Shown here one piece after another: positions 40,868-61,977 of a DNA stretch of 64,000 nt (position 1 is its first letter; each line of letters opens with the position of its first letter). Source of the DNA: Haliotis rubra (lineage: Eukaryota); the NCBI RefSeq assembly GCF_003918875.1, contig NW_025767048.1, positions 186,001 to 250,000 on the forward strand, written 5' to 3'. A model generated the notes under the pieces. The model was given only the letters and a program-made list of their open reading frames with translations. It was not told the DNA's origin and made no database searches. The position numbers and the translations under genes are program-made.

Positions 40868-41222
40868 GGCTCTTTTCAGTAAAGTAACGTTTTGGTAACA
40901 TTTGTAATGTTTCAGTCAAATCCAGTTTTGAATGTCTACATTCTTTTGCCTGACAGCTCAGTAAGCAGTTCGTTACGGACAAGTTGTTTATGTGAAATGG
41001 CTGGTTCCTCTTGACTTTTAATAGTCTCGGACAAACAGGCTAGTGCCCGCGCCAATCCCTTGAGCATATTAACACAGAGTCGATTCAAATCTTGCTCTCA
41101 TCATGAATGGTAACATCGGGGTGTAATTATCAGTGAAATAGCCCTAGAGCATCAATGTGAGGGATACACCCACAGCACAAAGTATTCTGCAACGTAATTA
41201 CCAAGAGAAAAATGCTACTTAC

Positions 41223-41377
41223 AGTTTCGTGATGTTGACTGATAAGTTGTTAGGAATTTCCGTAATATTCTCCCCTTTGCAAGTGACACTTTCCGCATTA
41301 TCAGCCACTAGCCAACAAAATGTTTCCTCTGCAATGCTCAGTCTCAGCAGTTCAAACAGAAGAAACAGGCCCAACAT
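41223..41377 (-). CDS. First coding exon of an extracellular leucine-rich-repeat protein (signal peptide + LRRNT cap; possibly an LRR-GPCR or other LRR receptor)
   Basis: Translates MLGLFLLFELLRLSIAEETFCWLVADNAESVTCKGENITEIPNNLSVNITK(L). The C..VxCxxxxITEIPxNL..xITxL pattern fits LRRNT; perfect GTAAGT donor in phase 2 within Leu, typical of LRR exons; acceptor ttacag| at 41397. Confidence 0.8.
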
Positions 41378-41844
41378 GATGATATTCACGCCTCCTCTGT
41401 AATTACCACCAAACAGTAACTTTCATTATCTTCCTGCCATGTACAGTTCTAAGGATTTATACCACAGATGATAGAATGAAATATCCCATTCATAAACGGG
41501 GGTTTTCCATCGGCGAGCAGCTCGAGACTGACTGTGGTACGACTCTTGAGGACTCACTTCATACTGTTCAACCCCTGGAAGAAAAATGGATTCGTTCAAG
41601 AATGATCCGTTTCTGGCTTTCGACAATGACAGTTGTAGATCCACGACAGAAGTAGGTATTAACAGATTAATGGCTTGTCGGTGCTTTTCATGTGATTAAT
41701 TTCACCAAAATATGGTTTGACGTGTGAATCTTACACAGACAAATCCAAACAGACAATTTCGGCAAAAGTTTTGATTTGTTGTATTATTGTAATACAATGT
41801 AATAAAACTAGCAATATGACATGACATATAACATATATCCTCAC

Positions 41845-41960
41845 CTTAGACAGATACGAAATATTTAACCATGGACGTTTATTCCATCCCGATTTCCACA
41901 CAAACCGCGAATGAGGGATTTGTGACCATTCAAACGATAGGACTGGCTCGTGTCACGCTA
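41845..41960 (-). other. Probable 5'UTR first exon of the LRR gene (5' boundary uncertain; duplicated at ~45288-45403)
   Basis: Minus-strand donor AAG|GTGAGG at 41845/41844 immediately downstream of the promoter motifs; contains a short uORF (MVKYFVSV*). Confidence 0.5.
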
Positions 41961-41994
41961 AGAGTGAATGAATGTCGTCTGCTAGAGAATGTAT

Positions 41995-42060
41995 GCCGGG
42001 TCACATGACCGATACCGATGCTACGCATGCGTAGGACTTATTACTATAAACTTCCGGATG
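41995..42060. promoter_or_regulatory. Candidate bidirectional promoter core
   Basis: GGTCACATGACC E-box (41999-42010), palindrome CTACGCATGCGTAG resembling an NRF1 site (42021-42034) and ETS motif ACTTCCGG (42050-42057) lie between two divergent ATGs about 755 bp apart. Confidence 0.6.
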
Positions 42061-42132
42061 CAGAGAAATTGAAAGAATACCTGATGCTGTAAATTTTGTC
42101 TGGCTACCTTTGTCGGTCGATGTTGACACAAA

Positions 42133-42258
42133 ATGAATTACTATGTGACATGTGTTATTTTGGTTTATTTTCTCCAAATATTAGTGCATTTTGTGCAGGG
42201 ACATGCTCGTTTTGTTTGTCCACGACCACAAAGCCCGCGATCTGACATTTATGAACAG
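42133..42258 (+). CDS. Coding exon 1 of a secreted protein with predicted N-terminal His (LPMO-like / His-brace-like)
   Basis: ATG 42133, 126 nt = MNYYVTCVILVYFLQILVHFVQG|HARFVCPRPQSPRSDIYEQ. Hydrophobic signal peptide ending V-Q-G; donor CAG|GTAGGT at 42258/9, phase 0, matching the phase-0 exon at 50467. Confidence 0.85.
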
Positions 42259-42987
42259 GTAGGTTGTGCACATGTATGATGCATGCGTATTGTTAAAATT
42301 GATCATTTATAAATGAAAACTCGTATGAAATTAGCATGTGCTGTAATTATACTTCTGTTGATGTGTTATTAAAATAATCTGCTTATCACATCAGCAATTT
42401 GGAGTGATAATATTTAATGATTAAACGTCGTGCATTAATATATAAATAATAAAGAATATAAGCGGTATAGCCTATGTATGCGATAAAAGCGTCATTTGTA
42501 CATTTATCTTGTCCTTTTTGTCTTCGGTTTCAAGGGTAATATTATGTTGAAAATTTATGTTTCAAAAATGTAAAAAAGTAAAAATAATACGCAGAGCCTT
42601 CTATTATGATGTGTTTACTCAGCATCATTATTGAAAGATCCCCCATGTATAAAGGGTGTCAAACATTATCATATGCCTCCAACCATCTAAAGGTGTGAGT
42701 AGGTTGATAATGTGATAAACAACTGAAGACGGTTCATTCCTGTGTCTCAGAAATTGGGTACTGTTATGAAATGGGGAAAGTGGGCAAAATGATCTAAACA
42801 GACCTAGTGTTGTAACCCATGTGTGTGCAATGAATTACTGATTACAGGTAACAGTCATTATAGGTGTAGAATGGGTATAGGGGTGCATGACCAGGTGGTC
42901 CAGTTGTGGCAGGTGCCACAGTTTGCAGTGCAGAGTTATTTCCCTTTGGCAAATTCCTTCGCCAAGAATAGGATACGTGGTTTGTGA

Positions 42988-43369
42988 GGTGAGGTGAGGT
43001 GAAATTGGGTTTAACGTTGTGCTTGAGAATATTTCGCTCATATGGCGACGTGCATGCGTGTGTATGTGTATGTGCGGCTGCTTGTACTAGCCCAGACTGA
43101 AGCTGGTTTTACAGTACTAGCCCACTGAGATACCATGCCGCAGTGAAGCATGAATACCCCACTCAGACACATTATACTGACTCCGAGCCGGCCAGTCCTT
43201 GTTGTACCCATTAATGCCGAGCGCCAGGCAGGGACCAACAAGTACCATATTTTAACGTCTTTTAGTATGACGCGGTCGGGGATCGAACCCGCGACCTTCC
43301 GCTCTCGGGCGGACGCTCTAACCACTACACCACGGAGGCCAATCCAAAAGAAAATGTAACTTGTCGGTC
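42988..43369 (-). mobile_element. SINE family C (duplicated at ~46433-46813)
   Basis: TSD ACGTGGTTTGTGA; ~25-nt insert near the 5' end. Confidence 0.9.
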
Positions 43370-43549
43370 ACGTGGTTTGTGAAGTCCCAGCCTGAATATC
43401 AGGTTTCACAAAGTGTAAAACTCCGAAGACCACTTTAACATCAGACATCATGGTAATGTGACACACACTGATTTAACTGAAGTACTGTTCATTGTAGCAT
43501 TTGCAATGACTCTCTCACCCAAATCTATAGACATAGCCAGTTTGGACAC

Positions 43550-43782
43550 AAGAAGATTTGGGTTAAAATTGGTCTTCAGCAACCCATGCTTTTGAAAAGA
43601 TGGGACTAACTGGATAAGGTGGTCAGGCTCTATGACATGTTTGATCATGTCATCGTATCCTAACTGTGTAGATCAATGCTCATGACGTCAGTCACTGGAT
43701 TGTCTGGTCCAGACTCAATTATTTACAGGCTGCCATCATATGGCTGGAATATTGCTCAGACAGTATTAAACAACAAACAAAA
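43550..43782 (+). mobile_element. SINE-like family B, diverged (duplicated at ~46995-47226)
   Basis: Body match. Further degenerate copies at ~23085-23285(+), 28470-28660(-), 35620-35720(-), 54411-54595(+), 60895-61115(+). Confidence 0.8.
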
Positions 43783-43937
43783 TTGGCCAGTTTGGGTTTA
43801 GTCATTTGAACATATGTTTACCAGGCATGATATATATTATTGTCAATCTGACAGTAGTGTATTCCTTTATTGCACAGATAATGTGTAACTTTGAAACATA
43901 ATTTTCTCTGTCAAAGTCAGATTTATATGATAAGGTG

Positions 43938-44270
43938 CAGGGCTCCAGATAATTTTCAGTATCAGGAGATGCATTACTCCTTATTTTTAATTATAGGAGT
44001 ACTGGAAAAACTTTTAGAGTACTGAATTGAATTTAATGGAGTATGTGATCTTGTGTTTTGTTTCTATGCACCATGACATTGCTACTATTGTGTAAACAGG
44101 TAAAAAACAATAAAACAATACTTTTTAAGATAAATACTTCTGTAAATGATTCTACGACCATACACCACTGCTGTGGTGCGTATCTGCTACTGTTTCTATA
44201 TTATTTCCTACCGTATCGTGCATATTTTTTATCCATACATACACCGATACGGCCCTTGTCTGGAGCCCTG
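43938..44270. mobile_element. hAT-like MITE with 5-bp TSD (duplicated at 47383-47715)
   Basis: TIRs CAGGGCTCCAGATAA / TTGTCTGGAGCCCTG; AGGTG on both flanks. Confidence 0.8.
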
Positions 44271-44620
44271 AGGTGCATCGGTTGGTCAGTTAACAAGGTT
44301 AATGATTACCCAGTGTATGCAGAGACATTGTATTTGCTGGACAAGAATCACATCTTAGTCCGTCTCCTAGACTTCAGACAATATATTCCGGAAGGACACC
44401 AAATCAGTTTTAGATTGCTTTAGGTCATGAAACTATTCTAGGTTCCTTTAAGATTTTATATATTTTTTGTTTGTAGATATACATTGTTTTGATAAGTTAA
44501 TATTTCTGGTACTAAATGTCAGCCTAACAACACCTATACCAAATGTGAATACCATATAACCTTGACTGGAAATATGAACCAATGAAATAAGAACAAATTG
44601 TGATAACATTTGTTGGAAAA

Positions 44621-44790
44621 TGAGTGAGTGAGTGAGCATTGCCTGACGCTACTTTTAGCAATATTCCAGCTATATCAAAATTATCATGGTGGGGGACACC
44701 TGAAATGGGCTTCACATATTGTGACCTTGTTGGGAATCGAACCCGGATCTTTGGTGTGATGTGTGAACGCTTTAACCACTAGGCTACCAC
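44621..44790 (-). mobile_element. SINE family A (duplicated at 48066-48235)
   Basis: Consensus match. Confidence 0.85.
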
Positions 44791-45575
44791 TAGCCAGTTC
44801 TGTCAGTTGCCAATGCTGTTATCATCAAGCAGACATCCAGCTGTATCACACATGTTATTAAAAGTAAACCACCTTTTATGAAAATTGTCTTGTTTCCATA
44901 TCCTAGTGCGTCTAAATACAGTTCAAAATGTTCAAGTGAGGTTATAGCATGGTAGTTATCTAATATATGAGCTACAATCTGGAGCATGATGTTAGACCCC
45001 ATTTCCCCTGATCTCTAAACTTTGATTTCAGCAATGTCATCCAAATTTTAAACATGGCTGTCATGTTGGCCATATTGAAAACATTCTATGAGCTGTCCTA
45101 GCCTGTCAACTGGGCCTGTCATTATCTGATGTTCACCAGATGTCCAACCATCCATTTAAAAGCACTGAACATAAAAACTCCTTCTAGCTTACAGAGTATC
45201 TCATTGTCAAGTTTTGATTTGTTGTATTATTGTAATACAATGTAATAAAACTAGCAATATGACATGACATATAACATATATCCTCACCTTAGACAGATAC
45301 GAAATATTTAACCATGGACGTTTATTCCATCCCGATTTCCACACAAACCGCGAATGAGGGATTTGTGACCATTCAAACGATAGGACTGGCTCGTGTCACG
45401 CTAAGAGTGAATGAATGTCGTCTGCTAGAGAATGTATGCCGGGTCACATGACCGATACCGATGCTACGCATGCGTAGGACTTATTACTATAAACTTCCGG
45501 ATGCAGAGAAATTGAAAGAATACCTGATGCTGTAAATTTTGTCTGGCTACCTTTGTCGGTCGATGTTGACACAAA

Positions 45576-45703
45576 ATGAATTACTATGTGACATGTGTTA
45601 TTTTGGTTTATTTTCTCCAAATATTAGTGCATTTTGTGCAGGGACATGCTCTCGTTTTGTTTGTCCACGACCACAAAGCCCGCGATCTGACATTTATGAA
45701 CAG
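45576..45703 (+). pseudogene. Duplicate of exon 1 of the His1 protein, frameshifted
   Basis: Same as 42133-42258 but CATGCT-CT-CGT (2-nt insertion at ~45651) shifts the frame right after His-Ala; donor retained. Confidence 0.7.
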
Positions 45704-48700
45704 GTAGGTTGTGCACATGTATGATGCATGCGTATTGTTAAAGTTGATCATTTATAAATGAAAACTCGTATGAAATTAGCATGTGCTGTAATTATACTTC
45801 TGTTGATGTGTTATTAAAATAATCTGCTTATCACATCAGCAATTTGGAGTGATAATATTTAATGATTAAACGTCGTGCATTAATATATAAATAATAAAGA
45901 ATATAAGCGGTATAGCCTATGTATGCGATAAAAGCGTCATTTGTACATTTATCTTGTCCTTTTTGTCTTCGGTTTCAAGGGTAATATTATGTTGAAAATT
46001 TATGTTTCAAAAATGTAAAAAAGTAAAAATAATACGCAGAGCCTTCTATTATGATGTGTTTACTCAGCATCATTATTGAAAGATCCCCCATGTATAAAGG
46101 GTGTCAAACATTATCATATGCCTCCAACCATCTAAAGGTGTGAGTAGGTTGATAATGTGATAAACAACTGAAGACGGTTCATTCCTGTGTCTCAGAAATT
46201 GGGTACTGTTATGAAATGGGGAAAGTGGGCAAAATGATCTAAACAGACCTAGTGTTGTAACCCATGTGTGTGCAATGAATTACTGATTACAGGTAACAGT
46301 CATTATAGGTGTAGAATGGGTATAGGGGTGCATGACCAGGTGGTCCAGTTGTGGCAGGTGCCACAGTTTGCAGTGCAGAGTTATTTCCCTTTGGCAAATT
46401 CCTTCGCCAAGAATAGGATACGTGGTTTGTGAGGTGAGGTGAGGTGAAATTGGGTTTAACGTTGTGCTTGAGAATATTTCGCTCATATGGCGACGTGCAT
46501 GCGTGTGTATGTGTATGTGCGGCTGCTTGTACTAGCCCAGACTGAAGCTGGTTTTACAGTACTAGCCCACTGAGATACCATGCCGCAGTGAAGCATGAAT
46601 ACCCCACTCAGACACATTATACTGACTCGAGCGCCAGTCCTTGTTGTACCCATTAATGCCGAAGCCAGGCAGGGACCAACAAGCACCATATTTTAACGCT
46701 CTTTTAGTATGACGCTGTCGGGGATCGAACCCGCGACCTTCCGGCTTCTGGTAGGGACGCTCTAACCACTACACCACGGAGGCCAATCCAAAAGAAAATG
46801 TAACTTGTCGGTCACGTGGTTTGTGAAGTCCCAGCCTGAATATCAGGTTTCACAAAGTGTAAAACTCCGAAGACCACTTTAACATCAGACATCATGGTAA
46901 TGTGACACACACTGATTTAACTGAAGTACTGTTCATTGTAGCATTTGCAATGACTCTCTCACCCAAATCTATAGACATAGCCAGTTTGGACACAAGAAGA
47001 TTTGGGTTAAAATTGGTCTTCAGCAACCCATGCTTTTGAAAAGATGGGACTAACTGGATAAGGTGGTCAGGCTCTATGACATGTTTGATCATGTCATCGT
47101 ATCCTAACTGTGTAGATCAATGCTCATGATGTCAGTCACTGGATTGTCTGGTCCAGACTCAATTATTTACAGGCTGCCATCATATGGCTGGAATATTGCT
47201 CAGACAGTATTAAACAACAAACAAAATTGGCCAGTTTGGGTTTAGTCATTTGAACATATGTTTACCAGGCATGATATATATTATTGTCAATCTGACAGTA
47301 GTGTATTCCTTTATTGCACAGATAATGTGTAACTTTGAAACATAATTTTTCTCTGTCAAAGTCAGATTTATATGATAAGGTGCAGGGCTCCAGATAATTT
47401 TTCAGTATCAGGAGTACGTACTCCTTATTTTTTAATTATAGGAGTACTGGAAAAACTTTTAGAGTACTGAATTGAATTTAATGGAGTATGTGATCTTGTG
47501 TTTTGTTTCTATGCACCATGACATTGCTACTATTGTGTAAACAGGTAAAAAACAATAAAACAATACTTTTTAAGATAAATACTTCTGTAAATGATTCTAC
47601 GACCATACACCACTGCTGTGGTGCGTATCTGCTACTGTTTCTATATTATTTCCTACCGTATCGTGCATATTTTTTATCCATACATACACCGATACGGCCC
47701 TTGTCTGGAGCCCTGAGGTGCATCGGTTGGTCAGTTAACAAGGTTAATGATTACCCAGTGTATGCAGAGACATTGTATTTGCTGGACAAGAATCACATCT
47801 TAGTCCGTCTCCTAGACTTCAGACAATATATTCCGAAAGGACACCAAATCAGTTTTAGATTGCTTTAGGTCATGAAACTATTCTAGGTTCCTTTAAGATT
47901 TTATATATTTTTTGTTTGTAGATATACATTGTTTTGATAAGTTAATATTTCTGGTACTAAATGTCAGCCTAACAACACCTATACCAAATGTGAATACCAT
48001 ATAACCTTGACTGGAAATATGAACCAATGAAATAAGAACAAATTGTGATAACATTTGTTGGAAAATGAGTGAGTGAGTGAGCATTGCTTGACGCTACTTT
48101 TAGCAATATTCCAGCTATATCAAAATTATCATGGTGGGGGACACCTGAAATGGGCTTCACACATTGTGACCTTGTTGGGAATCGAACCCGGATCTTTGGT
48201 GTGATGTGTGAACGCTTTAACCACTAGGCTACCACTAGCCAGTTCTGTCAGTTGCCAATGCTGTTATCATCAAGCAGACATCCAGCTGTATCACACATGT
48301 TATTAAAAGTAAACCACCTTTTATGAAAATTGTCTTGTTTCCATATCCTAGTGCGTCTAAATACAGTTCAAAATGTTCAAGTGAGGTTATAGCATGGTAG
48401 TTATCTAATATATGAGCTACAATCTGGAGCATGATGTTAGACCCCATTTCCCCTGATCTCTAAACTTTGATTTCAGCAATGTCATCCAAATTTTAAACAT
48501 GGCTGTCATGTTGGCCATATTGAAAACATTCTATGAGCTGTCCTAGCCTGTCAACTGGGCCTGTCATTATCTGATGTTCACCAGATGTCCAACCATCCAT
48601 TTAAAAGCACTGAACATAAAAACTCCTTCTAGCTTACAGAGTATCTCATTGTCATAATTCTACAATGCCTTCATGTCTCTGGCTATTTCATGCACCTGTC

Positions 48701-49204
48701 GTTTTGAAAAAATGAAAAGTAGCAATCACCACAGTAAATTTAGTAAGTGATATCAGCTTTTTGTCCATGTTACAGGAAAAAGTTTAAAGAAAAGTTTTAA
48801 CAAAAACTGGTTTGTAAAAAAGGTAATTTTTAACCCATGGTAACTGAACATCAAGTTACAATTTGTGCTGTAGATTAACTGATAGATAATTATATTACTG
48901 AAAGTGTCCCTGTGTGTATCCGTTTCAAACACCCAGACATTAATTGATTCATCAGCCTTAGCTGGAAATATCATTCCAGCTCTCTTTTTTATATGTTCTA
49001 TGCACGAAAATGCAATTTTCCAGTTACAATGGCTACTTGGATTGCAGAAGAAAGGTTACGCTTCAGACAATGTTTATTGCTCACGCTTTTTTCTCGTAAC
49101 TATTATGAAATGTGAATAAGAACTTGGTTGTAATGTGGACAAAAACACGTCTGTAAAGTTGGTAGGATCAGCACAAGTTATATAGGATTATTCCTTGGTT
49201 ATCA

Positions 49205-49370
49205 GGGGGTGGTGGGGTAGCCTAGTAGTTGAAGTGTTCGCTTGTCACACAGAAGACCTTGGTTTGATTCCTCACAATTGGTGAAGCCCATTTCTGGTGT
49301 TCCCCATTGTGATACTGCTTGAATATTGCTAATAGTGGTGGAAAACCTTACTTGCTCTCTCACTCACTCA
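49205..49370 (+). mobile_element. SINE family A
   Basis: Diverged full-length copy. Confidence 0.85.
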
Positions 49371-49427
49371 TTCCTTGGATATCATCCAGTTTGTGTGTCT
49401 TAACTGAATGCATAGTATCAACACCCA

Positions 49428-49830
49428 TCATTGTTAGGATCAACACCTGTTTTTCAGAATCTACACCTGATTGTTAGGATTAATACCTGATTGTTAGGAT
49501 GTAAACCTGATTGTTAGGATCAATACCTGATTGTTAGGATCAATACCTGATTGTTGGGGTCAACTGCTGATTGTTAGGATCAATACCTGATTGTTAGGAT
49601 CAACACCTGATTATTAGGATTAACACCTGAATATCAGGATTAACACCTGATTGTAAGGATCAACACCTGATTGATCATCATGTATTTAGGATCAACACAT
49701 AATTGTTTGGATCATCAGCTGTCTTAGGATCATCAGCTGTCTTAGGATCACCACCTGATTGTTAGGACCGGTTCCTGAGTATTGGATCAATACGTGATTA
49801 TTAGAATCAACATTTGATTGTAGGTCTACA
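49428..49830. repeat. 20-bp minisatellite (CCTGATTGTTAGGATCAA(T/C)A)n
   Basis: Roughly 15-20 units, degenerate at the edges. Confidence 0.9.
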
Positions 49831-50000
49831 CTTGATCGTTCGTATGAACACCAAATCATTCATGAACACACAGCATACTGCTGATACACATCTACATATG
49901 TCGTGATGCATACTGTACGTATGTTACTTGTTAGCAGCTTGTTACCGGCTATCTTTCCTCATCAGACTGACCAGCTGTGATAGATCTAGTGGAGCACTCT

Positions 50001-50450
50001 GGGGGCGGTGGGGTAGCCTAGTGGTTAAAGCGTTGGCTTGTCATGCGAAGATCCGGGTTCAATTCACCACATAGGCACAATTGTGTGAAGCCCATTTCAG
50101 ATTTCCCCTGCCGTGATATTTCTGGAATATTGCTAAAAGCAGCGTAAAACCTTACTCACTCACTTATAATTTCAAATTGTGCTAATGTAGACTTTGCTAA
50201 CATGCTGAAAATATGTATGATTTGGAAAAAAGTAGTACATGTATTACCAAACATATTGTCATGCTTATACTGGTAATACTGCATGTCTGTTGCTCACAAT
50301 TGTGTGAAGACCATTTTAGGTGTCCCCTGCCGTGATATTGCTGGAATATTGCTAAAAGCAGCGTGAAGCAATACTCACTCACTCCCTCCCTCCCTCCCTC
50401 TCTCACTCACTCACAATGCACTCACTTACTCACTCACTCACTCACTCACT
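50001..50450 (+). mobile_element. SINE family A full copy (50001-50165) plus 3' half (50295-50450) with expanded ACTC/CTCC tail
   Basis: Consensus match; the tail runs to within ~16 nt of the exon at 50467. Confidence 0.85.
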
Positions 50451-50466
50451 GCACTCTGTGTTTCAG

Positions 50467-50590
50467 TGGCCTACGAAGCAGTTAGACGGACCGTGTGGAC
50501 TGGGCGACGTTATTGACTTTGAAACAGAGTATACAGAGGTGGAGCCTGGCCCCTTCACAGTTGTCTTTGAAGAAACAGTGTTCACTAAAG
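50467..50590 (+). CDS. Coding exon 2 of the same His1 secreted protein
   Basis: Acceptor ctctgtgtttcag|, donor AAG|GTAACT. 124 nt = WPTKQLDGPCGLGDVIDFETEYTEVEPGPFTVVFEETVFTK(G), in frame with exon 1. Further exons not identified in the window. Confidence 0.85.
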
Positions 50591-51483
50591 GTAACTTCAA
50601 AATAGAAATGTGTGATAATTTATTGTGAATCCTTTCCAAGCTGTTGTGTGTGTCTTTCATTTCAAATCCTGTTTGTTTCCGGAAGGGTCGGGACAAGTGA
50701 AGACAAAATTATGTATTATAAATATGATATTAAAAAAAATCGAATAAATTAATTCAATGTTGCATTAAATCGACTCTCGTGCCCTCTGTCCGAACATTAT
50801 TTCAAGCGAACTCCATAGAGTTATGTTCCTTGGAGCGCTCTTTACGAATATCATATGCACAACTTGTGATTGAAACCAGTTTGGCAAACACTGACAACAC
50901 CATGTGCAACGGTTTTAGATCATTCTATGTATGTCAACTGTTCTCTGTTTGGAAGCTGTTCACCTCGAAGTTTCAATTATCGATTTCAGGCAAGTCATAA
51001 GGGATAATAAGTGCATATGCCCCAATACATATAATAAAGGCCAAAATATTGTCGAAAATATTTGACATTGTGCCTTTAAATAAAAAGACAAAACACACAA
51101 AAAATATGATCCTCTTTCAAAAGACAAAGTATATGAATTAGAGTTACCTCCCCTTAGTGAGCTTTAGTCATCCGTAACGAACTTGAGTTTTGCTAAGTGC
51201 TCAAGTTCTTATTGGAGCCCAAATTTATTTAATCATATCTTTATTATGGCTGTTGAACAAGAAGAACAGCTCAACACACATTAGCATGTACTGTGTGTCA
51301 GTGAAAAGATGATAATAAGGACAGTTCTATGGCACTGAACTCCATGACACATGGGCATGCTCAAAGATGAACAATTGTAAGTGATTAGGAAACGAATGGG
51401 AATTAGGCCAGATTTAGGAAGGAGCACATCTGAGGTGAAGGGCAAGGGAGTAGCACAGCAGCAGTGTTTGAAGGATCTGGTAC

Positions 51484-52292
51484 TGGCGCTGAAACGGTTA
51501 CCCGGGTACTAGAGTACAAGGCAGGTAGGAGCACTACACAAGTAGTAAAATATTACTTGAGTACTCGTCCAAGAAGAAATATCTCCCCTTTTACTCAATG
51601 TTTAGTCGTGTGGGTCCAAACATGGCAGAGCAATCACGAGTTGTATTTAAACTTGTGTGGTTTATTTATACCAGTAGATCATGCAATTACTGGGTGGTCG
51701 GGTAGCCTAGTGGTTAAAGTGTTCACTCGTTACGCCGAAGACCCGAATTCGATTACTCACATGTGTACAATGTGTGAAGCCCATTTTTGGTGTCCACCGC
51801 CGTGATATTGCTGGAATATTGCTAAAAGCGGTGTAAAACTAAACTCACTCACTCACTCACTCACTCACTCACTCACTCACTCATGCAATTACTGATCAGT
51901 TTTAGAATAAATCACAACATAGCAATTACTGATCAGTGTTGATTACAACAGGAGACGTGGTTCATTGTTTATTTCGTATTCAATGGGCTTCAGATATAAG
52001 GTACGCATAACACAAGAACAATTGAGTTGTCAGATGGGATCATTATGTTTTAAAAGAACACACCTCAATAGCCTGAAATTTGTACCTGAAACAAAGACGT
52101 AATTACTGTTCAAAACACGAGAAAAACGCATTTCAGAGCTTCTAATTTACAAAATTATTGGGGGTGGGGGTGGGTGGGGTGTGGGCATCTCGGCTCACCC
52201 GCTTTGCAGTCTCGAGGATGAGTACTCAAGTACTCGCGAGTAGTTAAAGGCGAGTACTCGAGTACTTTCGATTACTACCCATTTCAACCCTA
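51484..52292. mobile_element. hAT-like non-autonomous element containing a SINE A
   Basis: Ends TGGCGCTGAAACGG / CCATTTCAACCCTA; subterminal GAGTACTC repeats; decayed 8-bp TSD TCTGGTAC / TCTGTCAC. Confidence 0.65.
51693..51881 (+). mobile_element. SINE family A
   Basis: TSD CATGCAATTACTG; long (ACTC)n tail. Confidence 0.9.
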
Positions 52293-53621
52293 TCTGTCAC
52301 CAAATGTCTTCAAAGTGTAGGGAGGTAAAGAGAGCAGGACTTTGGCAGCTATTTATTAGAGACTATGAGAAAACTGTGATGGTATTTTGGTTTGCTGGTA
52401 GATACCACCACTTTAGAGGGTTGATGCTGCGTGATCATTGGCCACCTAAAACCCAAAGACTTTAAACAATGGTGCTTGTTGCTACCCTGCCTGGCGCTAG
52501 GCATTAAGGAGATAAACCAGGATCTGGTCAGTACACAGTCAGTATACTGTGTGGGGTATCCATGTTATAAGTACCGTATTAGGCTAGCATGTTACAACCA
52601 AGTAAGTAAGTCCAGGCTAGCACAAGTGCACACCCACACTCATGCATGTTGCTCTATAAGTTCAATGTTCTTGAATGGGACTACCTCCTGGTGATTGCTG
52701 CAGTGGCCTTGTTTCATCTAAACTATTGAATGTTTTACAGCATGAAATTTCATTGATTGAGAACTGTGTCATTTTAATTACAGGATTTGCTCTGTAAATG
52801 TAAAATATACATAATCAACACTAAGGTTATACGGACCCTCACGAACATGGTAAGTGGAAGTTGTACGTGCATGGAATGAGGTGAAATAAGAATTTCACGG
52901 ATGTCACTGTAATCTAGCAGTCCATGGATAATGAGGCGGTAATCAGTTTTGTGATTGTTGATAATATGTGAAATTGGTGCTATCGCGTTTGGAGTGAAAA
53001 ACGTACCCTCACCAACATGGTATGCGGAAGTTGTACGCACATGGAAGGGGGTAAAATAAACAAGCCAGTTTGTTGACATGTGATCGTCCAACTACAATAC
53101 ACATGATATTTAGTGAAACAAACTATATTATCCATTTTCTGTCAATTACACTTCATCTCAAGGCATGAGTAGACACAATATGATTGTGAATTCTTTGATT
53201 AATGCGGATCGAAGTTGTAATTATCGGTAACTGCCAGTTTGCTGCGATTAGGATCCCATTGCGGGTGGTCGCTTTATGTACGAAACATACCATTTTGACA
53301 CTGATTTTAAGGGTCAAGTTAGGGGGTCGGCTGATCCATGGGCTTATCTACGGTGATATACGGTAACTGAAACTGGGATGAAACTTGTTTCTCTCACTTC
53401 CAGATGGCCTCATATTTGCTCATGATACATATCCCCCATTCAAAATGGACCCTTCTCCCTTGTTTGGTTGTAAAAATTGTGAAAATCAATCTGTTATTTT
53501 AACTAAGCATGACAACAATTGGATTACCTGTGTTAGTGATTTGTTAGTTGATGCAGTCATCTTGGAACAACTGTTTCACGATTTCAGGTGTCATCATACA
53601 TCTGGATATCAAAATATCAGT

Positions 53622-53998
53622 GACCGCCTCCGTGGTGTAGTGGTTAGAGCGTCCGCCCAGAGAGCGGAAGGTCGCGGGTTCGATCCCCGACCGCGTCATA
53701 CCAAAAGACGTTAAAATATGGTACTTGTTGGTCCCTGCCTGGCGCTCGGCATTAATGGGTACAATAAGGACTGGTCGGCTCGGAGTCAGTATAATGTGTC
53801 TAAGTGGGATATTCATGCTTCACTGCGACATGGTGGGCTAGCACTATAAAACCAGCTCAGTGGGCTAGCACTATAAAACCAGCTTAAGTCTGGGCTAGTA
53901 CAAGCAGCCGCACATACACATACACTCGCATGCACGTCGTCATATGAGCGAAATATTCTCAAGCACGGCGTTAAACCCAATTTCACCTCACCTCACCT
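53622..53998 (+). mobile_element. SINE family C
   Basis: TSD AAAATATCAGT; internal ~25-bp duplication. A 3' fragment lies at 28157-28316(-) and a degenerate relative at ~52420-52680(+). Confidence 0.9.
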
Positions 53999-54927
53999 AA
54001 AAATATCAGTATACATTTATTATAATTTTTGTTGTCATAAAGTTTTGAATATCAGTAATACAGTAATCATTGTCTGGCCCAGAAATATTGACCTATATTA
54101 CAGTCACCATTTTAAGGACAATGTGAAGGCATCAAGAGTTCAATGCTTATTCATCTATTGTAACATATTTACCATCAAATTTCAGACTTGCATGGGTAAT
54201 TGAACTACTTTATAACTATTCACAAATTAATAAATATTATTAACAGAAATGTCAGTACCCTATAACACTTGAGTCAGCTTTTCATTCAGTGACACGCCGA
54301 TCTGCATGAATATCTTGATCATGTTGGTATGACTATTAAAATTGTATATTTGATACTTCCATCATTTGACATTATCACGGTTATCACATGATACTATGAT
54401 CATTGTCTGGGACCTGTGAAGATAGGTTAGAATTGGTCTTCAGCGAGACCATGCTTATGAGAGGTGACTAACGGGATTGAGTGGTCAGGCTCTCTCGATT
54501 ATTTACAGACTGAAACCCACTTCACCCCACCCTCACCAGCCATACAGCTGGAATATTGTTTAGTGCCCGCGTGGTGTTACAAAACAAGCAAGCAAAACCA
54601 TCATTATCTGTATACATCCATACTGGAGGATCACTGAAAATATCGCCTGCTAACGGCAAGTGAAATTCAAAGCATACAGCAAACACTAATATTCTTAAAT
54701 TCTCAATACCTCATGTATATGAAAGGTCAATAAAATGTCTTTGTCACTTAAATCAATTCCATTCTGCTTGCTGTATAAGAGCCACATGCTGATCACAGAG
54801 ACCTTTAGGGGAAATCTGATTATATGCTTATGAACACGAGATTAGAAACTTCTTTTTACAGACAAAAATTTAGTAACTCTATGTCAAGTTTGTCCAATCA
54901 TCAGAAATCATTTAGCATCACTATCAA

Positions 54928-55846
54928 CTATAGTTTGGCATGAAATGCATGTGGACCCGTTTTTTTGTAAATATCTCTTCATCCAATGACCCAATCGATC
55001 TCAAACTGTGCAAGTGGATGTTTTGTCAGACAACCTAATCACATTGTAAATCACCGATTTTATGCATTTGTATTAAAGAATCTGTCTATGTAACTGTCAA
55101 CAAAATAAACAGCAGAACGCAAACTGCTTGCAGAGGGAGGGAGCCAATGACCTGTAACAGCGGCAGTGTTGGGTCATAAAGGTAAATGCACGTGCAGTTC
55201 ATGATAGTTACCTGTGCACTGCACAGTGATAGACCGTTTGGATCATTCACATTGACTACATCTAGCTGTCATCATGAAAGCTTATTCAGATGATGCTAAA
55301 CATTTAATTAGAAATGTGTTTAAATTTTTTTAAAAAGAGAGCAAACGTAGCAAACCGATTTATCAGGTGTCGGATTACATGAAACGTACAAGAACATCGT
55401 GCTACAAATTGTGAAAAATAAACCAACAACCAATAAACAAAACCTTGTACAAAAAGGTAGGCATCCAAAGTTAGATTCTTTTGACATCAGGGTCATCAGA
55501 GATGTCATTCGACGGCTTTTTGTTAGAAATGAACACCTCTTCTATCACTGTGCGGTGCACAGGTAACTATCATAAACTGCACGTGCATTTACCTTTATGA
55601 CCCAACACTGCCGCTGTTACAGGTCATTGGCTCCCTCCCTCTGCAAGCAGTTTGCGTTCTGTTGTTTATTTTGTTGACAGTTACATAGACAGATTCTTTA
55701 ATACAAATGCATAAAATCGGTGATTTACAATGTGATTAGGTTGTCTGACAAAACATCCACTTGCACAGTTTGAGATCGATTGGGTCATTGGATGAAGAGA
55801 TATTTACAAAAAAACGGGTCCACATGCATTTCATGCCAAACTATAG
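54928..55846. mobile_element. Foldback-type non-autonomous DNA transposon with 306-bp inverted arms (TA-flanked, Tc1/mariner-like)
   Basis: 54928-55233 is the reverse complement of 55541-55846 with about 3 mismatches; ~307-bp spacer. Confidence 0.85.
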
Positions 55847-57462
55847 AAATCAATTGTGAGCATCCAGTTAGAATGAAATCAGAATGTGTGTGAAATATGA
55901 CTGTGAAATATCTCTGTTATCATTATCTCATTGTTTTCTATAAGTGTTACATCACTGAATGAGATAGCATTCCTGTACCAATAGGGCTCTTGTTTGTTGT
56001 AAAGAGGTAAACTATTCCAGTGTTTCATATAATCCTCTTTCATGTGGACTCATGAGTTTAGTAAGAACTATTTGATGAAAATTTCAAAGTGAGACCCTTT
56101 TCAATTCTCCACCTTTCACTCACAGAACACTTAAGGAATGCCCTTGAGTTTTGTTCAAGGTTGTCTCGCTTTTGTGTTCCATATCGCTGGCAATGATGTC
56201 AAGTCAGAAAGGTGACATGTTAAAATGAACAATGATGTCTGTCCACGTAGGTCATGTTCCACAGACTCCCCTGATGTATGTTTATATCTTTCATGACATG
56301 AGTACTTTAAAATGTCTGGTGTTTGTCCTGCAGGGAATCCATGATAAACTTCTCATGTTGTATTAGGACGGAATGTGCCACAGAGACCGTCTTTGGAGTA
56401 TATCTTTATTTGTCGATTGGATATCCCTTCTTCGTGAAATATAAAGCTTGCGGCAATGGGAGATTAGAGATTATGAAAATGGCATTGATTTTACCTGCCT
56501 AGTGTTGCCAATATGGTGTAAGTTAATATACATGAGCAGTGTCACCTGGAATAAGTGAAGGGTAATGAGTGAATTCCTTAAGTTCTTCATGAGACTGGCA
56601 TGTTTTAACATGATGCAAGACTTCTAGACCAAGAGAATACGACACTAGATACACAAGGTATTGATTTGACTCCAAGTTACATGCATGATAGTTACCTTTT
56701 TGCCAAGAGTAAAAAATTGAACTAGTTGAAGAAAGACATTTTCTCATTCATGTATTTGCTTTAGGGATATACATGTTAAAAAAAATTCAGTTAGCTTTTT
56801 GTTTTTAAAACAGTTTTTGAAAAGTGCACATAACCTTCAGATGAAGGTAGGTATAGGTCTTGTCCTTGGTGATTCCAAGCCCCACTGAACAAGGCATGTG
56901 TTTTCTCAAACCAGATTGAAATCATATTAACCGATGTTCAATAAATAGCAACAAGGGTGAGACTTTAAATATTTAAAGTGTTTCTGGAATGTTGGCCATT
57001 TTTTGTCAGCTATTTGATACTAGAAATACATTGCCTGTATGCCCACCCATCGATGGTTCCATAACTATTGTTGGGGATATACAGGGGTTTACCTTGACTC
57101 ACAAAAATGGGGATCCCGGGACCCATAATTATTAGTTTTAAGGGTACTTGCAGGCAATACGATGGTCTTGTGACATAGCGATGTGGGGAACTGTATGTTT
57201 TGATCATTTCTTTAGAGCCTGGACTGAATCATTGATAATCTGGACTGAAGGTTGAAATGATGTACGTAACTGCTCTGAAAGAAACAACCAAACACTTAGC
57301 AAAGTCATAGATATGTTGTGGGTAAAGTGAATTATATTGTGCTTCCCTTTGGAGGCAGTGAATTTTGTTTTCTACGTCCATTCTCTACATTTGTGCGCAC
57401 CGGACGCACATTTGCGAGTCGCCTAAAAACCTGGATATATATCCAGAACCTCTTCATGGATT

Positions 57463-58013
57463 TGGACGGTGGGTAGCCTAGTGGTTAAAATGTTCACTTA
57501 TCATTCTGAATACCCAGGTCCGAGTACATGAGTACAATGTGAAAACCATTTCCGATGCGCAGAGTCTTAACAAAATTCAGATGCGGCTCCACCAATTTAA
57601 AAATAGTTTCGTAAAGAAGATCTAAAGACAATGACATCAGTGTAGCTATGTGCGATTATTGTAAAAATGTACCAGAAGATGAGTACCATGTGTTAATGAA
57701 ATGTCCTTTATATGCAGCGGTAAGAACTCACTACATACCAAGTATCTATATTATGAACCCAAATAAACAAAAATTTGTACATCTTCTAAATACTAAGAAC
57801 CATAACATCATACTCCGTCTAGCAATTTTTGTAAACAAAATCATGTACATGCGCTCTGTAAAAATTTAATCTAAGTTGACATTTTGTACTATTGGCCTCA
57901 TGGCCACATTTATGAAATAAACTTGTCTGTCTGTCTGTCTGTCCATTTCCGATGTTCCCTGCCATGATATAGCTGGAATATTGCTAAAAGCAGAAAAAGG
58001 GCATACTCATTCA
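57463..58013 (+). mobile_element. SINE family A split by a LINE insertion
   Basis: Head 57463-57557, tail 57955-58013. Confidence 0.8.
57558..57942 (+). mobile_element. 5'-truncated LINE 3' end (RTEX-like zinc knuckle) inserted inside a SINE A copy
   Basis: RVLTKFRCGSTNL..CDYCKNVPEDEYHVLMKCPLYAAVR; AATAAA + (TGTC)n tail; 12-bp TSD CCATTTCCGATG (57546-57557, 57943-57954). Confidence 0.85.
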
Positions 58014-59540
58014 GTCTTCATGGATTTTGTTCCTATTTACTGCCCAGCGGTCACAGAACAACATGTATTGATAGTAATAGTGTTGCCTTAATTTTCAAGG
58101 TCATGGGAACATTTGACCAATTTGGTGTTTGGTGATATCTCCAGAATCTTTTCATGATATTTGGTTCGAATTTGTATACACCTTTTCAAGCATTGGACCC
58201 TTTTTCAAAAGGTTTTGAATCAAGGTCAGGATTCATTTGGTGTGAAAAACATGGCTATGTCTTTGTCAGTTTCTGAGGCGGGATGACCTCCATAGGCATG
58301 AAACAACTGCATTTATGTCAATGTCTTATCTGGTAATTGTGCAGTGGAGTTGGATCATATATTCTCTTGCAAAGATTATTAACATTAGAGGATATCCAAC
58401 AAAGGTCAAGGTTACAGGATAGAAAAAGCTCAATATTTTGTTAATGCTTACACTTTATATAATGGTATCAAACCATTTATCATTAAACTGAGTACATACC
58501 CTCTCAAGGACAGGGTCCTTTATTTAAATATATTTTGTCCAAGGTGAAGGTTCAAGTTTTAATAAGATAAGGTCATTGACAGGTTTTGAGATTTTGTTAC
58601 CTTTGCAGGCATGAAATTTATGGTTTCATCTTTTGCACTTTTGCTTGCACAATCCTTGAACTTGTTGGATCATATGAAGCTGTCTATATTCAAGGTCAGT
58701 GTCTGGAAGCTGTGTTTTCTGAGTTGAAGTACATCGCTTGTTATTATTTGGGGATCTTTGTGGAAATGTTGTAGTAGCAGGCATTTACAGTTGCTCCATA
58801 AATTTTCATCTCAAATTTATTCCATCCAATTTGTAGCAGGTGACAAGGTTGTGTCATTGAAATGCATTGTGATGTGTAATGTTATCCAAAACCTTCTAAG
58901 AATTTTTGTAAAAGGTGTATATAATGTAAACATTTCCATAATGTTTCCACTGTTCTTGAGGAAAGTTTACTGGACTGAAGCCAACAGAATAATTAGTGTC
59001 AAGCCCTGGAACCTTAGATACCAACTCCTAATATGATAGTCAATGCATTTGCAGACTAGTAATCAATAGTCCATGCTGTAAGCAATACTTCTGAGGAACC
59101 AGTTGAGAATCATCAGGATTTTACCACTGTTTAATGGACAAGGACTATTCCCACATGTATAAATATTGACAAAGGATGCAAATAATATGCAGTGTGAATC
59201 CCTTGGTCCCAAGCAGACATTGTTGCTTGAATCTATTTCTATTTCTCTCCTTCTGTTGTAGCTCTCATGTAGATTTTAATGGACACTGCTGTTGAGATTT
59301 TAAAATGCAAGGCTTCCAACGTATAAACGTATGCCAAGGACTCGCAAATTCTTTTGTCCCCACATAACTGTGATACAAAATTAAACATCATAAAATGTAC
59401 TTTACAATTAAACAGTTATTAGAAAAAGGATATAACAAAAATGTGTTTTGGGGGGAGAGTGGTGATGATCATAAACCATTAATATATGCTTCGCATGTGT
59501 ATAATCATGATAATTATTCCTCAGATTTATAACAATACGT

Positions 59541-59790
59541 GACCCTTGAAGGTCCGGGTTAGAATATTGATCTTCAGTAACCCATGTTTGTCATAAGAGG
59601 TGACTAACGGGATTGGGTTGTCAGGCTCGCCGACTTAGTGGACACATGTCATCGGTTCCAAGTTGTGCAGATCAATGCTCATGCTGTTGATCACTGGATT
59701 GTCTGGTCCAGACTCAATTATTCACAGACCGCTGCCATATAGCTGGAATATTGCTGGGAGCGGCGTAAAACTAAACTCACTCACTCACAC
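59541..59790 (+). mobile_element. SINE-like family B
   Basis: TSD TAACAATAC. Confidence 0.9.
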
Positions 59791-59840
59791 TAACAATACC
59801 TGTTGAGTAGTGGACAGTAGTTCCAATATGAAACAGTATG

Positions 59841-60002
59841 TGTGAGTAAGTAGGGTTTCACGCCGCTTTTAGCAATATTCCAGCAATATCACGGCAGAGG
59901 ACATCAGAAATGAGCTTCACACATTTTACCCATGTTGGGAATCGAACCCAGGTCTTGACAGCATGACGAGCAAGAGCTCTTACCACTAGTCCCCACCGCC
60001 CC
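59841..60002 (-). mobile_element. SINE family A
   Basis: TSD GAAACAGTATG. Confidence 0.85.
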
Positions 60003-61977
60003 GAAACAGTATGAAATCCAATTATGTACAAAGAGGGCTGTTTCTGTAAATGCTGAAACAAGTGTTAAGTGGTTCTTTACCTGAGTCCCAATCCTTGATG
60101 TATAAGTGAAGCATTAAACTGCACTGGTCCCCCCTCCTTCCCTTCCTCTCTCCCCTTCCCTCCCTTCCTCTCTTCCCCTCCCTCCCTTCATCTCTGTAAC
60201 CAGCTGCCGGCTGTATGTGGCCATTCACTCAATAGCGTACATCCACTGCGGACCACTTTCATCACTCCACTTAACAGGTTTAAAATAACATATTTGTTAG
60301 GCCTTGAACATGTTAAAGAAAACATGCTGTTGTTCCAATTACCTTATCCTAACCTCATTTGTGGTGCCTTTTTTATCCTTTTTTTGTCAGTAACATAGAA
60401 AAGGACCTCTTTCACACATTTCAGGGTTTTGTTGGTGTTTTTTGGTGTAATTGGTTGTTGAGCTGTCTGTCAGATTTTGCAACATGTCCAAGCAAGTTTT
60501 CATGCTCTTAATGTCTCAGCAATACATGAATGAAACCGAGGGGCAAGATACGCTCACCTTTCGCAAGCATCTGTTATAAGTAATCTTTCTAAAGGATTGG
60601 AATTGTGCGACCAAATCTGCTCTCAGCACAGATTTCTTATGAATTCTGAAAGAGTTTATTTGATTCAAATATTGTTTTCTGTTGACACATAGTGAGCACC
60701 CAACAATTCAAATCTCAGTAACTTTGGGTTGTCAACTATGTATTGCTTGTTTTTGAATTTGAAACACTTCATTGATATCTGTATGTCCAGTTATGCTAAT
60801 GTCGGCTGTTAAATTAAAGATTACATAATTATCACTGTCACCTTTCTTTCATTTTGGACACAAATGCCCAAACTGTCCATGGCACCAGATTGTGCAATCT
60901 GGGTTAGAATTGGTCTTCAGCAAGATGGAAGAGGCAACTATCAGGATCAGGTGATCAGGCTCGCTTACTTGGTTGACACATGTCATAGTGTCCGAAATGC
61001 GTAAATCAATGCTCATGGTGCTGATCATAGGATTGCCTGGTTCATTTTTGTTATTGACTGCCGCTATGTAGATGGAATATTGCTGAGTGCGGGTTTTAAA
61101 CAACAAACAAAAACAATCAGTAACAGCCTCTCCTTGGAATGTGTAATAAATCTCAGAATTACCTGATATCATACTTGTCTGGGGGAAAGGGTAACCCATT
61201 TGTCCAAGGTGCCACATTTGCAGATTTGCATTCCTTGACCACGTCAGAAACATACTGTGACGAAATCAAATCCCATTTTGCTCAGATTATGTTTTTCGAT
61301 TAGTCAGGCCCCCATGTTCATGGGTTTCACCAAAATTGTTCCTTCTGGAATGAATGTCCAAGAGGTTCAAGGCACCAGAGTGTCCAGTGCTTGATTGTGT
61401 TCTTGTAATGATGGTGAATGATAGTTAATGGCGAATTAACTGATAATCACCTGATTATCAATATCATCCTTCAGCTCTTAGTATCAGGCAAGTGGGTTCA
61501 CCAAAAAGACAAAGGTTGGCAACCATCAGCAACTGAGACTTTCTTTCATTGTTCGTTTAACAGAAAAACTTGGGCGTGTGACAGTTTAATTTGCAGACAG
61601 CATGTCACTCGGAATCGCCAGAAAACTCTTAATGCTAAAATAGAAATGACATAGACTGAAAAATGTATTAAAAAACTAAAATTCTTTTATGTCTTCTGTC
61701 AAAATGTCAAATGATGATTGTTCTAGTTCTTATACAGCATGTTTTATCAAATTAAACATGCCTCTCAGATCCAAGATGGTTGCAGTATTGAACTTATTCA
61801 GGTCTTATCTTGTTAATAAGAATAGTAAAAATCATTGGCTTAACCAGATAGGCCAACAAAGGTTGTGAAAAATGGTATGGTAGTACTGTGAAAGAAAATA
61901 GTTTTATACTTTTCACATTTTTCAAAAAAAATAAAATTCGTTTACTTACCACAATGTCTCTCACTATAAACAATATC

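Follow-up and report, generated by a model that had tools for sequence, protein, structure and literature searches.

A predicted abalone membrane protein with an LPMO-fold N-terminal domain and an incomplete histidine brace

The 64,000-nucleotide stretch of Haliotis rubra DNA analysed here (the window) contains two short exons that, once joined, encode a signal peptide followed immediately by histidine, and the locus thus raises the question of whether an abalone makes a histidine-brace copper protein outside the recognised animal group, and what such a protein might do. To our knowledge, animal LPMO-type copper proteins have so far been described as AA15 enzymes.

Gene Structure and Orthology

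Coding exon 1 (42133-42258, forward strand) consists of 42 codons, MNYY...VQG|HARFVCPRPQSPRSDIYEQ, and ends at the donor CAG|GTAGGT with the GT at 42259. Its first 23 codons (42133-42201) encode the signal peptide ending in VQG, and the cat codon of His1 follows at 42202-42204, exon 1 covering mature residues 1-19. Coding exon 2 (50467-50590, forward strand), comprising 41 codons and one base between the acceptor tttcag and the donor AAG|GTAACT, encodes mature residues 20-60 (WPTKQ...EETVFTK) with the GPCG and FEET motifs. The intervening intron 1 (42259-50466, 8208 nt, forward strand) is rich in high-copy repeats, with very high word depth in the DNA runs at 46305-47209 and 49925-50467. Exon 1 and residues 1-42 of H. 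asinina P0004 share 93% identity, and the annotated N-termini of the H. asinina and H. rufescens proteins match the joined peptide across the junction (...SDIYEQ|WPTK...), so the pairing of the two exons is not due to chance. The exons proposed in the first-pass annotation, with canonical splice sites and a product in which His follows a signal peptide ending in VQG, are therefore real; only the final glycine of its peptide was read from the intron, as exon 2 closes on a single base (phase 1), to which exon 3 (C2158:256680-256807) adds AT to give Asp (...EETVFTK-D-SPFRISLH). Searches of sequencing runs gave matches of low share only, and contigs from four of these runs cross introns and therefore represent genomic DNA of related abalone; their joints were repeat-driven and included no splice joints. 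Use of the junction and expression of exons 1 and 2 are predicted from the orthologous gene models.

The gene continues beyond 50590. The two exons are the first of about 23 coding exons of a gene of about 119 kb (C2158:228133-346806), which continues for about 96 kb past the window end; the first 13.4 kb of the 20,089-nt intron 2 occupy the remainder of the window (50591-64000, forward strand), exon 3 lies beyond it, and no coding match to the orthologues was found in 50591-64000. Exon-by-exon matches to H. asinina P0004 extend over residues 1-915 at 85-98% identity without internal breaks. The gene is present in a single copy in the genome, and its orthologues are "uncharacterized" proteins of 915-919 amino acids in H. 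asinina and H. rufescens, which confirms the earlier view of an intron-containing animal gene. Scanned singly against Pfam and NCBIfam, the exons were too short to give a match; a feature search of the ESM Atlas with exon 2 gave no usable match, and a scan for bacterial-type promoters and terminators, irrelevant to an animal gene, returned nothing.

Domain Architecture

Rather than a small secreted protein, the gene is predicted to encode a type I membrane protein of about 915 residues, with the LPMO-fold domain outermost. The order of its parts is signal peptide, LPMO-fold domain of about 170 residues (the N-domain), four CHRD-like beta-sandwiches and a cupredoxin-like domain (together a stalk of about 700 residues), one transmembrane helix and a short tail. 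The hydrophobic helix and a basic stretch come after the cupredoxin-like domain, and the cytosolic tail of about 20 residues ends in F-x-R-F.

The CHRD assignment in abalone draws on structural neighbours of low TM score and on orthologues, and should be read as putative. Of ten clusters that neighbour the model of the middle region in the Atlas, eight were CHRD proteins (TM 0.22-0.33), and Foldseek against the PDB with the 541-residue stalk model retrieved only generic tandem Ig-like arrays. Pfam CHRD (PF07452) matches the orthologues of a sponge (E 3e-53, three domains) and of Owenia (E 2.7e-7); the proteins of abalone and of other gastropods gave no match. With Chordin and bacterial CHRD-domain proteins the abalone protein shares four tandem beta-sandwich repeats, for which CHRD clusters are the nearest in the Atlas; unlike Chordin, it lacks VWC domains, and the repeats in gastropods have diverged too far for Pfam to recognise. 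The literature searched contained no fusion of CHRD to an LPMO-like domain.

The membrane-proximal domain matches Cu_bind_like (PF02298) with 25.5 bits against a cut-off of 20.8 (P0004:740-915), similar matches being found in H. rufescens and Pomacea. No conserved set of type-1 copper ligands (His, Cys, His, Met/Gln) was present in an alignment of 11 orthologues: neither histidine position is conserved, and C-N-x-S-P-P-L-K stands in place of the ligand loop. The domain thus resembles phytocyanins and early nodulin-like cupredoxins in its above-cut-off family match, and early nodulin-like proteins in the absence of copper ligands, but it belongs to an animal protein and precedes a transmembrane helix rather than a GPI signal.

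Fold and Family of the N-Domain

The AlphaFold2 model of the N-domain (pLDDT 90.2, pTM 0.88) is predicted to adopt an immunoglobulin/FnIII-like beta-sandwich of LPMO topology, as had been anticipated. All 28 Foldseek matches at E <= 0.001 were LPMOs or fusolins. The best match by VIA-align was TdAA15A (5msz; Z 11.7, rmsd 2.9 A over 144 residues), with model residue 1 placed on chain residue 1; it was followed by AA10, AA13, AA11, X325, AA9 and AA16 structures, the top 22 all being LPMOs or X325 (Z 7.9-11.7). A profile search of the PDB by sequence gave borderline rows only, among them 5msz (E 0.13), which supplied the Tyr184 alignment described below. Two others, 8rbk (E 0.18) and a dynein chain (E 0.16), were regarded as chance matches; no paper on 8RBK was found in the literature searched.

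By sequence, the sole family match is NCBIfam NF043005 (SCE4755), found for all 12 N-domains and all 10 further relatives, though always below the curated 75-bit cut-off: the abalone-type domain scored 45.1 bits (best E among the 12, 9.9e-12), and the relatives 40-71 bits. The abalone-type domain covers positions 22-145 of the 146 in the family model, and most further relatives extend from positions 3-9 to 130-145. Pfam LPMO_10 (PF03067) gave no match at E <= 10 among the 12 animal N-domains, and one protist relative reached 17.9 bits, under the 23-bit cut-off; AA15-type exons of the same genome score 51-61 bits. The suggestion that the domain is closer to SCE4755 than to AA15 is thus upheld at the sequence level, and the N-domain is probably part of a group spread across eukaryotes that is sister to the bacterial SCE4755 family and distinct from the AA15/AA10-type LPMOs of the genome.

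Several comparisons place the domain further. First, SCE4755 proteins, named "polysaccharide monooxygenase-like", share with it an LPMO-like fold and a His after the signal peptide, and SCE4755 Atlas clusters are its structural neighbours (TM 0.58-0.60); the animal proteins differ in carrying CHRD, cupredoxin-like and transmembrane parts, and in the eukaryotic signature LLDHIPHN(D), for which a scan of bacterial and archaeal genomes gave no related match. Second, AA15 provides the best structural match (TdAA15A), with brace-histidine and axial-tyrosine positions that align with those of the N-domain family, and shares with that family the motif IPD-x-C-x-x-C-x-L and the C-terminal strand Y-x-x-C-A-x-[IV]-x-I. 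The N-domain family differs from AA15 in having no LPMO_10 match, a much shorter L2 region and an extra conserved D-H-I-P-H motif, and the abalone domain in lacking the second histidine. Third, the fungal X325/Bim1 copper proteins likewise carry an LPMO-fold domain that is anchored at the cell surface and is not known to cleave polysaccharide, and LaX325 matches the N-domain structure at Z 9.4. However, X325 proteins are small, are held by a GPI anchor and have a His/His/Asp copper site, whereas the abalone protein stands on a long stalk and is anchored by a transmembrane helix, and the only BIM1-like signal (PF20238) among the 12 members is one 13.8-bit match (E 0.083), the gathering score being 27 bits. 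Neither a characterisation of the SCE4755 family nor anything on the family of the abalone gene was found in the literature searched on SCE4755, Haliotis LPMOs and LPMO-like families.

Copper-Site Residues

The copper site of TdAA15A is formed by His1, His91 and Tyr184 (PMC5823890). In the abalone protein, cleavage with Val at -3 and Gly at -1 (VQG|H) would expose His1, in agreement with the earlier reading, and in over 60 relatives, too, the signal peptide is followed by His. Among 76 sequences His1, His59 and His89 are conserved at 90% or more and His92 is invariant, and the relatives keep all four together with Tyr158. Alignment by hhalign of the family profile with AA15-type exons of the genome (E 5.9e-5, at a probability of only 65%) placed His59 on the histidine of the AA15 motif TA-x-H, the equivalent of TdAA15A His91, and Tyr158 on the AA15 tyrosine; hmmsearch against 5msz likewise placed Tyr158 on Tyr184. 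This axial tyrosine, within F-Y-S-C-A-N, is encoded in the window gene's own genome (C2158:285847-285912).

A complete histidine brace is nevertheless not found in abalone. The second brace histidine is replaced by threonine in three abalone species (in the window gene through the act codon at 50584-50586, forward strand, in exon 2), the window gene, H. asinina and H. rufescens all having Thr59 and Gln89; all three keep His1, His92 and Tyr158. His1 itself, for which conservation in orthologues had been expected, is lost in five molluscs (Lottia, Lymnaea, Bulinus, Biomphalaria and Liolophura). Several molluscs thus appear to have lost His1 and/or His59 independently, while Glu54, Glu55, Asp88 and His92 stay invariant. 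The ancestral state of the N-domain, seen in the sponge, annelids, some gastropods and protists, includes His1, His59 and Tyr158, so that a histidine brace most likely held copper in it.

Distribution and Origin

The N-domain family is present in a sponge, annelids and molluscs, and further relatives occur in diatoms, chlorophytes (green algae), Naegleria and giant viruses. A scan of bacterial and archaeal genomes for LLDHIPHN(D) returned nine pattern matches, none of them a relative by tblastn, and the tree was therefore built without bacterial sequences. The orthologues follow the species tree; as to the choice posed between vertical and horizontal origin, this indicates that the gene family was inherited vertically within animals (sponge, annelids, molluscs) rather than acquired recently from bacteria.

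The abalone locus points to a second, sequence-distinct animal LPMO-fold family, one with a membrane anchor and CHRD domains. In a broader and tentative reading, to which we give well under even weight, this would be an ancient, undescribed family reaching from sponge to molluscs, in which a membrane-anchored LPMO-type copper domain is joined to CHRD repeats and presents up to four histidines (His1, His59, His89, His92) and Tyr158 at its active face. Intact members would then form a new auxiliary-activity-like class of copper proteins that diatoms, green algae and giant viruses also have, and molluscs, including abalone, would have repeatedly converted it to a non-brace form. The scattered loss of His1 or the brace histidine in molluscs, in a domain otherwise conserved, provides a ready comparative series, which could address what an LPMO scaffold does once its copper site is removed.

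Proposed Role of the Abalone N-Domain

The explanation we favour, with moderate confidence, is that this membrane protein of about 23 exons displays an SCE4755-sister LPMO-fold tip which in abalone has become a non-canonical surface module (pseudo-LPMO). After cleavage His1 would form the mature N-terminus of a sandwich of about 170 residues, held away from the membrane by the CHRD-like and cupredoxin-like stalk. The ancestral His1/His59/Tyr158 site would have bound copper, and abalone would have changed His59 to Thr and the nearly invariant His89 to Gln. With another residue in place of one histidine of the copper-holding pair, the abalone N-domain is probably not a working LPMO-type enzyme. 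From the gene structure, orthology, fold, family relation and residue states described above, we infer that canonical copper monooxygenase function was lost and that the domain may serve in binding or as a scaffold at the cell surface.

As abalone keep His1 and Tyr158, copper could still be bound. The best-surviving alternative, which we consider possible though rather doubtful, is that His1 (through its amine and imidazole) and a nearby ligand such as His92 hold copper for redox chemistry or copper handling at the surface, in the manner of X325/Bim1 and without polysaccharide cleavage. Retention of His1, Tyr158 and His92 in all abalone sequences, the LaX325 structural match and the weak BIM1-like signal are consistent with this, as is the strand order of the model, by which His92 and His89 would lie near His1, with His92 at the same end of the sandwich; either might replace His59 as a ligand. 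Replacement of the brace-equivalent His59, the dispensability of His1 in five mollusc orthologues, a BIM1-like match far under its cut-off and a cupredoxin-like domain devoid of copper ligands speak against it.

A secreted, catalytically active LPMO-like enzyme with which a grazing gastropod would process algal or other polysaccharides, the role originally envisaged, is very improbable. The signal peptide with His1, the LPMO fold and the axial tyrosine would fit such an enzyme, but the protein is predicted to be anchored in the membrane behind a stalk of about 700 residues, the brace is incomplete in all three abalone species, and His1 is lost in five orthologues, so that a digestive role has no support. 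Moreover, the sponge and annelid orthologues follow the species tree, and the gene is thus not tied to grazing; the genome also has at least 14 LPMO-like loci, and the four checked are of the conventional AA15/LPMO_10 type and keep the brace histidine. The abalone gene accordingly offers no evidence of a new digestive polysaccharide oxidase.

Least probable of all is a decaying gene, pseudogene or assembly artefact, for which a frameshifted second copy of exon 1 and the replacement of two nearly invariant histidines might be cited, but the first copy is intact, all of the approximately 23 exons can be traced with open frames across residues 1-915, Thr59 and Gln89 recur in H. asinina and H. rufescens, and the N-domain is 87% conserved between these two species, like the rest of the protein (88-92%).

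Tandem Duplication Around Exon 1

Exon 1 lies inside a 3.44-kb tandem duplication, the two units of which are 99.2% identical. Unit 1 (41766-45209) begins 367 nt ahead of the ATG, contains exon 1 in intact form and runs into intron 1; unit 2 (45209-48654), joined to it head-to-tail at 45209, lies within intron 1. In the second copy of exon 1 (45576-45703, forward strand), an inserted CT at 45649-45650 follows immediately on the His-Ala codons and shifts the frame. The units differ in 34 columns, and as these include transitions besides indels, the duplication is either a real recent event or two haplotypes placed in tandem. A 324-nt contig of related abalone DNA spans 45462-45787 (326 nt) with two gap letters, which is consistent with the in-frame form of exon 1.

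Gene structure

The first-pass annotation joined two exons into the start of a secreted protein, and the sequence is as described there. Exon 1 (42133-42258, forward strand; 42 residues, donor CAG/GTAGGT) translates into a putative hydrophobic signal peptide ending in V-Q-G, followed by H-A-R-F-V-C-P-R-P, while exon 2 (50467-50590, forward strand; acceptor tttcag after a pyrimidine tract, donor AAG/GTAACT) codes for W-P-T-K-Q...E-E-T-V-F-T-K plus one extra base. Exon 3, located 20 kb downstream of exon 2 and beyond the window (forward strand, C2158:256680-256807, C2158 being the contig that holds the window), contributes AT to an Asp codon, followed by S-P-F-R-I-S-L-H; the Gly originally read as the last residue is intron read-through, since exon 2 ends in phase 1 and the spliced codon gives Asp.

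Used by itself as a phmmer query, exon 2 retrieved gastropod proteins of 911-912 residues, and a word-index search identified the orthologues from H. asinina (P0004, 915 aa) and H. rufescens (P0005, 919 aa). As the N-termini of both are continuous across the junction of exons 1 and 2, the pairing of these exons is evidently genuine and not due to chance. The window thus derives from an abalone, closely similar to these two species without matching either exactly. A genome search with P0004 yielded about 23 ordered exon matches on the forward strand (C2158:228133-346806), covering residues 1-915 with unbroken exons at 85-98% identity. The window contains only the first two exons of this 119-kb gene, each of them single-copy in the 1.38-Gb genome. 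The gene structure and orthology are established; NCBI lists the orthologues as uncharacterised, and no papers on the family were found in the literature searched. The sequencing runs that matched the locus proved to be of DNA.

Domain organization

In the predicted structure, residues 205-745 form a stalk of four beta-sandwich units (pLDDT 74.5). Eight of the ten Atlas clusters nearest to the stalk model were CHRD-domain proteins, including chordin, at TM scores that are low (0.22-0.33, multi-domain query), and only generic tandem Ig-like arrays were matched in the PDB. The CHRD reading is independently supported by orthologues: Pfam CHRD matches three domains in the protein of the sponge Oscarella (E 3.1e-53) and one in that of the annelid Owenia. 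The membrane-proximal domain scores above the Pfam Cu_bind_like cut-off; no conserved copper ligands were found in this cupredoxin-like domain in an 11-species alignment. It is followed by a hydrophobic helix, then by a basic stretch and a short cytosolic tail. The predicted product is thus a membrane-anchored, multi-domain type I surface protein with an LPMO-like domain at its tip.

The tail ends in F-x-R-F in every aligned gastropod except Plakobranchus (...S-L-F), and may function in sorting or as a PDZ-type signal. The F-x-R-F-COOH end is conserved from Patella to Biomphalaria; the C-terminus (P0004 residues 880-915) is encoded at C2158:346594-346806.

Family and fold of the N-terminal domain

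Pfam gave nothing convincing for the LPMO-fold domain that follows the signal peptide (N-domain). The NCBIfam model of SCE4755 family polysaccharide monooxygenase-like proteins (NF043005) matched all 12 animal N-domains (best match E 9.9e-12, 45 bits, model positions 22-145 of 146) and was also the sole match for ten further relatives (40-71 bits), every score falling under the curated cut-off of 75 bits. A profile of the animal domains retrieved 109 proteins of 110-370 residues, the named ones being from diatoms, Naegleria and Rhodomonas, in which a signal peptide is followed by H-[SG]-R-W-x-C-P-x-P-R, G-P-C-G, and then F-E-E-S-I-x-H-x-G-A-P-F-R-I and L-L-D-H-I-P-H-N-D. The motifs given in the first-pass annotation were therefore accurate.

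The SCE4755 model also detected at least 14 further LPMO-like loci in the genome, which points to a sizeable LPMO gene family in the abalone. The four inspected as sequence proved to be conventional AA15-type exons (C2189:3788775-3789107, C2789:1657430-1657777, C668:4257604-4257933 and C491:462291-462650, on other contigs of the same genome) with the motifs G-K-C-G-I-C-G-D, L-T-A-N-H-x-G-x-F-E-F and C-V-L-Q-W-K-Y. Their Pfam LPMO_10 (PF03067) scores are 51-61 bits, whereas the window-gene N-domain does not match LPMO_10 at all. By sequence, the N-domain is related to SCE4755 rather than to LPMO_10/AA15, as had been proposed from the motifs.

The predicted fold is that of an LPMO. The AlphaFold2 model of the N-domain (76-sequence alignment) has pLDDT 90.2 and pTM 0.88, and VIA-align against 48,161 PDB representatives ranked TdAA15A (PDB 5msz) first, with Z 11.7, 144 residues aligned at rmsd 2.9 Å and model residue 1 placed on chain residue 1; next came AA10, AA13, AA11, X325, AA9 and AA16 entries. 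All 28 Foldseek matches with E <= 0.001 were LPMOs or fusolins, in line with the LPMO-like fold expected at the outset. Atlas neighbours of the model included two SCE4755 clusters and LPMO_10 clusters, the closest predicted structures (TM 0.70-0.72) being hypothetical proteins of Nucleocytoviricota and chlorophytes; giant viruses would thus also carry this LPMO-like family. Also near the model is a mollusc cluster (158 aa) with a partial BIM1-like annotation.

Copper-site residues

Across the 76-sequence alignment, conservation is at least 90% for His1, His59 and His89 (mature P0004 numbering) and complete for His92; Glu54, Glu55, Asp88, Ile90, Pro91 and His92 are invariant among the 12 animal N-domains. 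The TdAA15A site comprises His1, His91 and, in the axial position, Tyr184; Ala89 precedes His91 by two residues (PMC5823890). When the family profile was compared with a profile of the abalone AA15-type exons (E 5.9e-5, probability 65%), His59 fell on the T-A-x-H histidine of AA15, and the tyrosine of Y-[HY]-S-C-A on that of AA15 F-Y-G-C-A-D; in an hmmsearch against PDB sequences, this family tyrosine matched TdAA15A Tyr184. His59, aligned in this way and corresponding to His91 of TdAA15A, is the putative second brace histidine. Judging from how the predicted strands are ordered and oriented, His92 would share one end of the sandwich with His1, residue 59 and Tyr158.

The window encodes Thr at position 59 (act, 50584-50586), as do H. 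asinina and H. rufescens, and Gln89 is present in all three abalone sequences; the histidine brace is incomplete in abalone. The full set is retained in Gigantopelta, Patella, Littorina, Dimorphilus, Owenia and Oscarella. His59 is lost in Haliotis, Pomacea, Plakobranchus, Elysia, Lottia, Bulinus, Biomphalaria and Liolophura, and His1 is missing in five molluscs (Lottia, Lymnaea, Bulinus, Biomphalaria and Liolophura). As loss of His1 or His59 has recurred in molluscs and the remainder of the domain has been kept, we infer that their proteins do not depend on a canonical brace. In abalone, the domain is most likely a module for binding or scaffolding at the cell surface, and may still bind copper through His1 and another ligand; a digestive LPMO role found no support.

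Origin

Profile searches traced the long form to gastropods, a chiton, annelids, a homoscleromorph sponge and, as a fragment, a bivalve. A maximum-likelihood tree was computed for 92 N-domains (fragments and sequences without the N-terminal or D-H-I-P-H motifs excluded, bacterial sequences absent); in it, 19 metazoan-labelled sequences, four of them assigned to animals by likeness, lie on one side of a branch with support 99/96, present in 100% of bootstrap trees. The internal order of this side tracks gastropod and annelid relationships, and the eukaryotic signature L-L-D-H-I-P-H-N-(D) was not found in bacterial or archaeal species genomes. The metazoan grouping and its species-like order speak for vertical inheritance in animals rather than recent transfer from bacteria, the question that the first-pass annotation had left to a phylogeny.

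Duplication of exon 1 and repeats

Exon 1 and 367 nt upstream of it lie inside a head-to-tail duplication with units 99.2% identical, whose differences are transitions as well as indels located in a repeat and T-runs. The first unit (41766-45209) contains the intact exon 1, which is thus the upstream copy, as assumed in the first-pass annotation; the copy in the second unit (45209-48654), at 45576-45703 on the forward strand, is frameshifted by a CT insertion (45649-45650) directly after the His-Ala codons. Either the duplication is real and recent, or the assembler placed two haplotypes in tandem. Around the second copy, 326 nt are covered with two gap letters by a 324-nt DNA contig of a related abalone, consistent with an in-frame form of exon 1. 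Just beyond the duplicated unit, about 740 nt from exon 1 and head-to-head with it, an ORF (41219-41389, reverse strand) would encode a signal-like peptide start and LRR N-terminal-like sequence.

The introns are filled with high-copy interspersed repeats (43038-43360, 46483-46690, 53544-53816, 49925-50467 and 51696-51883), whose word depth adds up to millions over four DNA runs. An ORF-like G-S-I-P-D-R-V-I-x-K-D-V-K core and a tRNA-like loose end, G-T-T-C-G-A-T-T-C-C-C-C, recur in several of them, features that suggest a SINE family. At C2158:335431-335771, the exon for residues ~611-648 has two further partial copies of its 3' part (G-A-E-I-V-P-T-V-G-L-G-A-F-V-L-D-R-V-D-V-L-Q-Y-R) in the following intron, ~103 nt apart; they form a short tandem array extending over the donor region, and another exon has a comparable partial copy at C2158:325378-325437.
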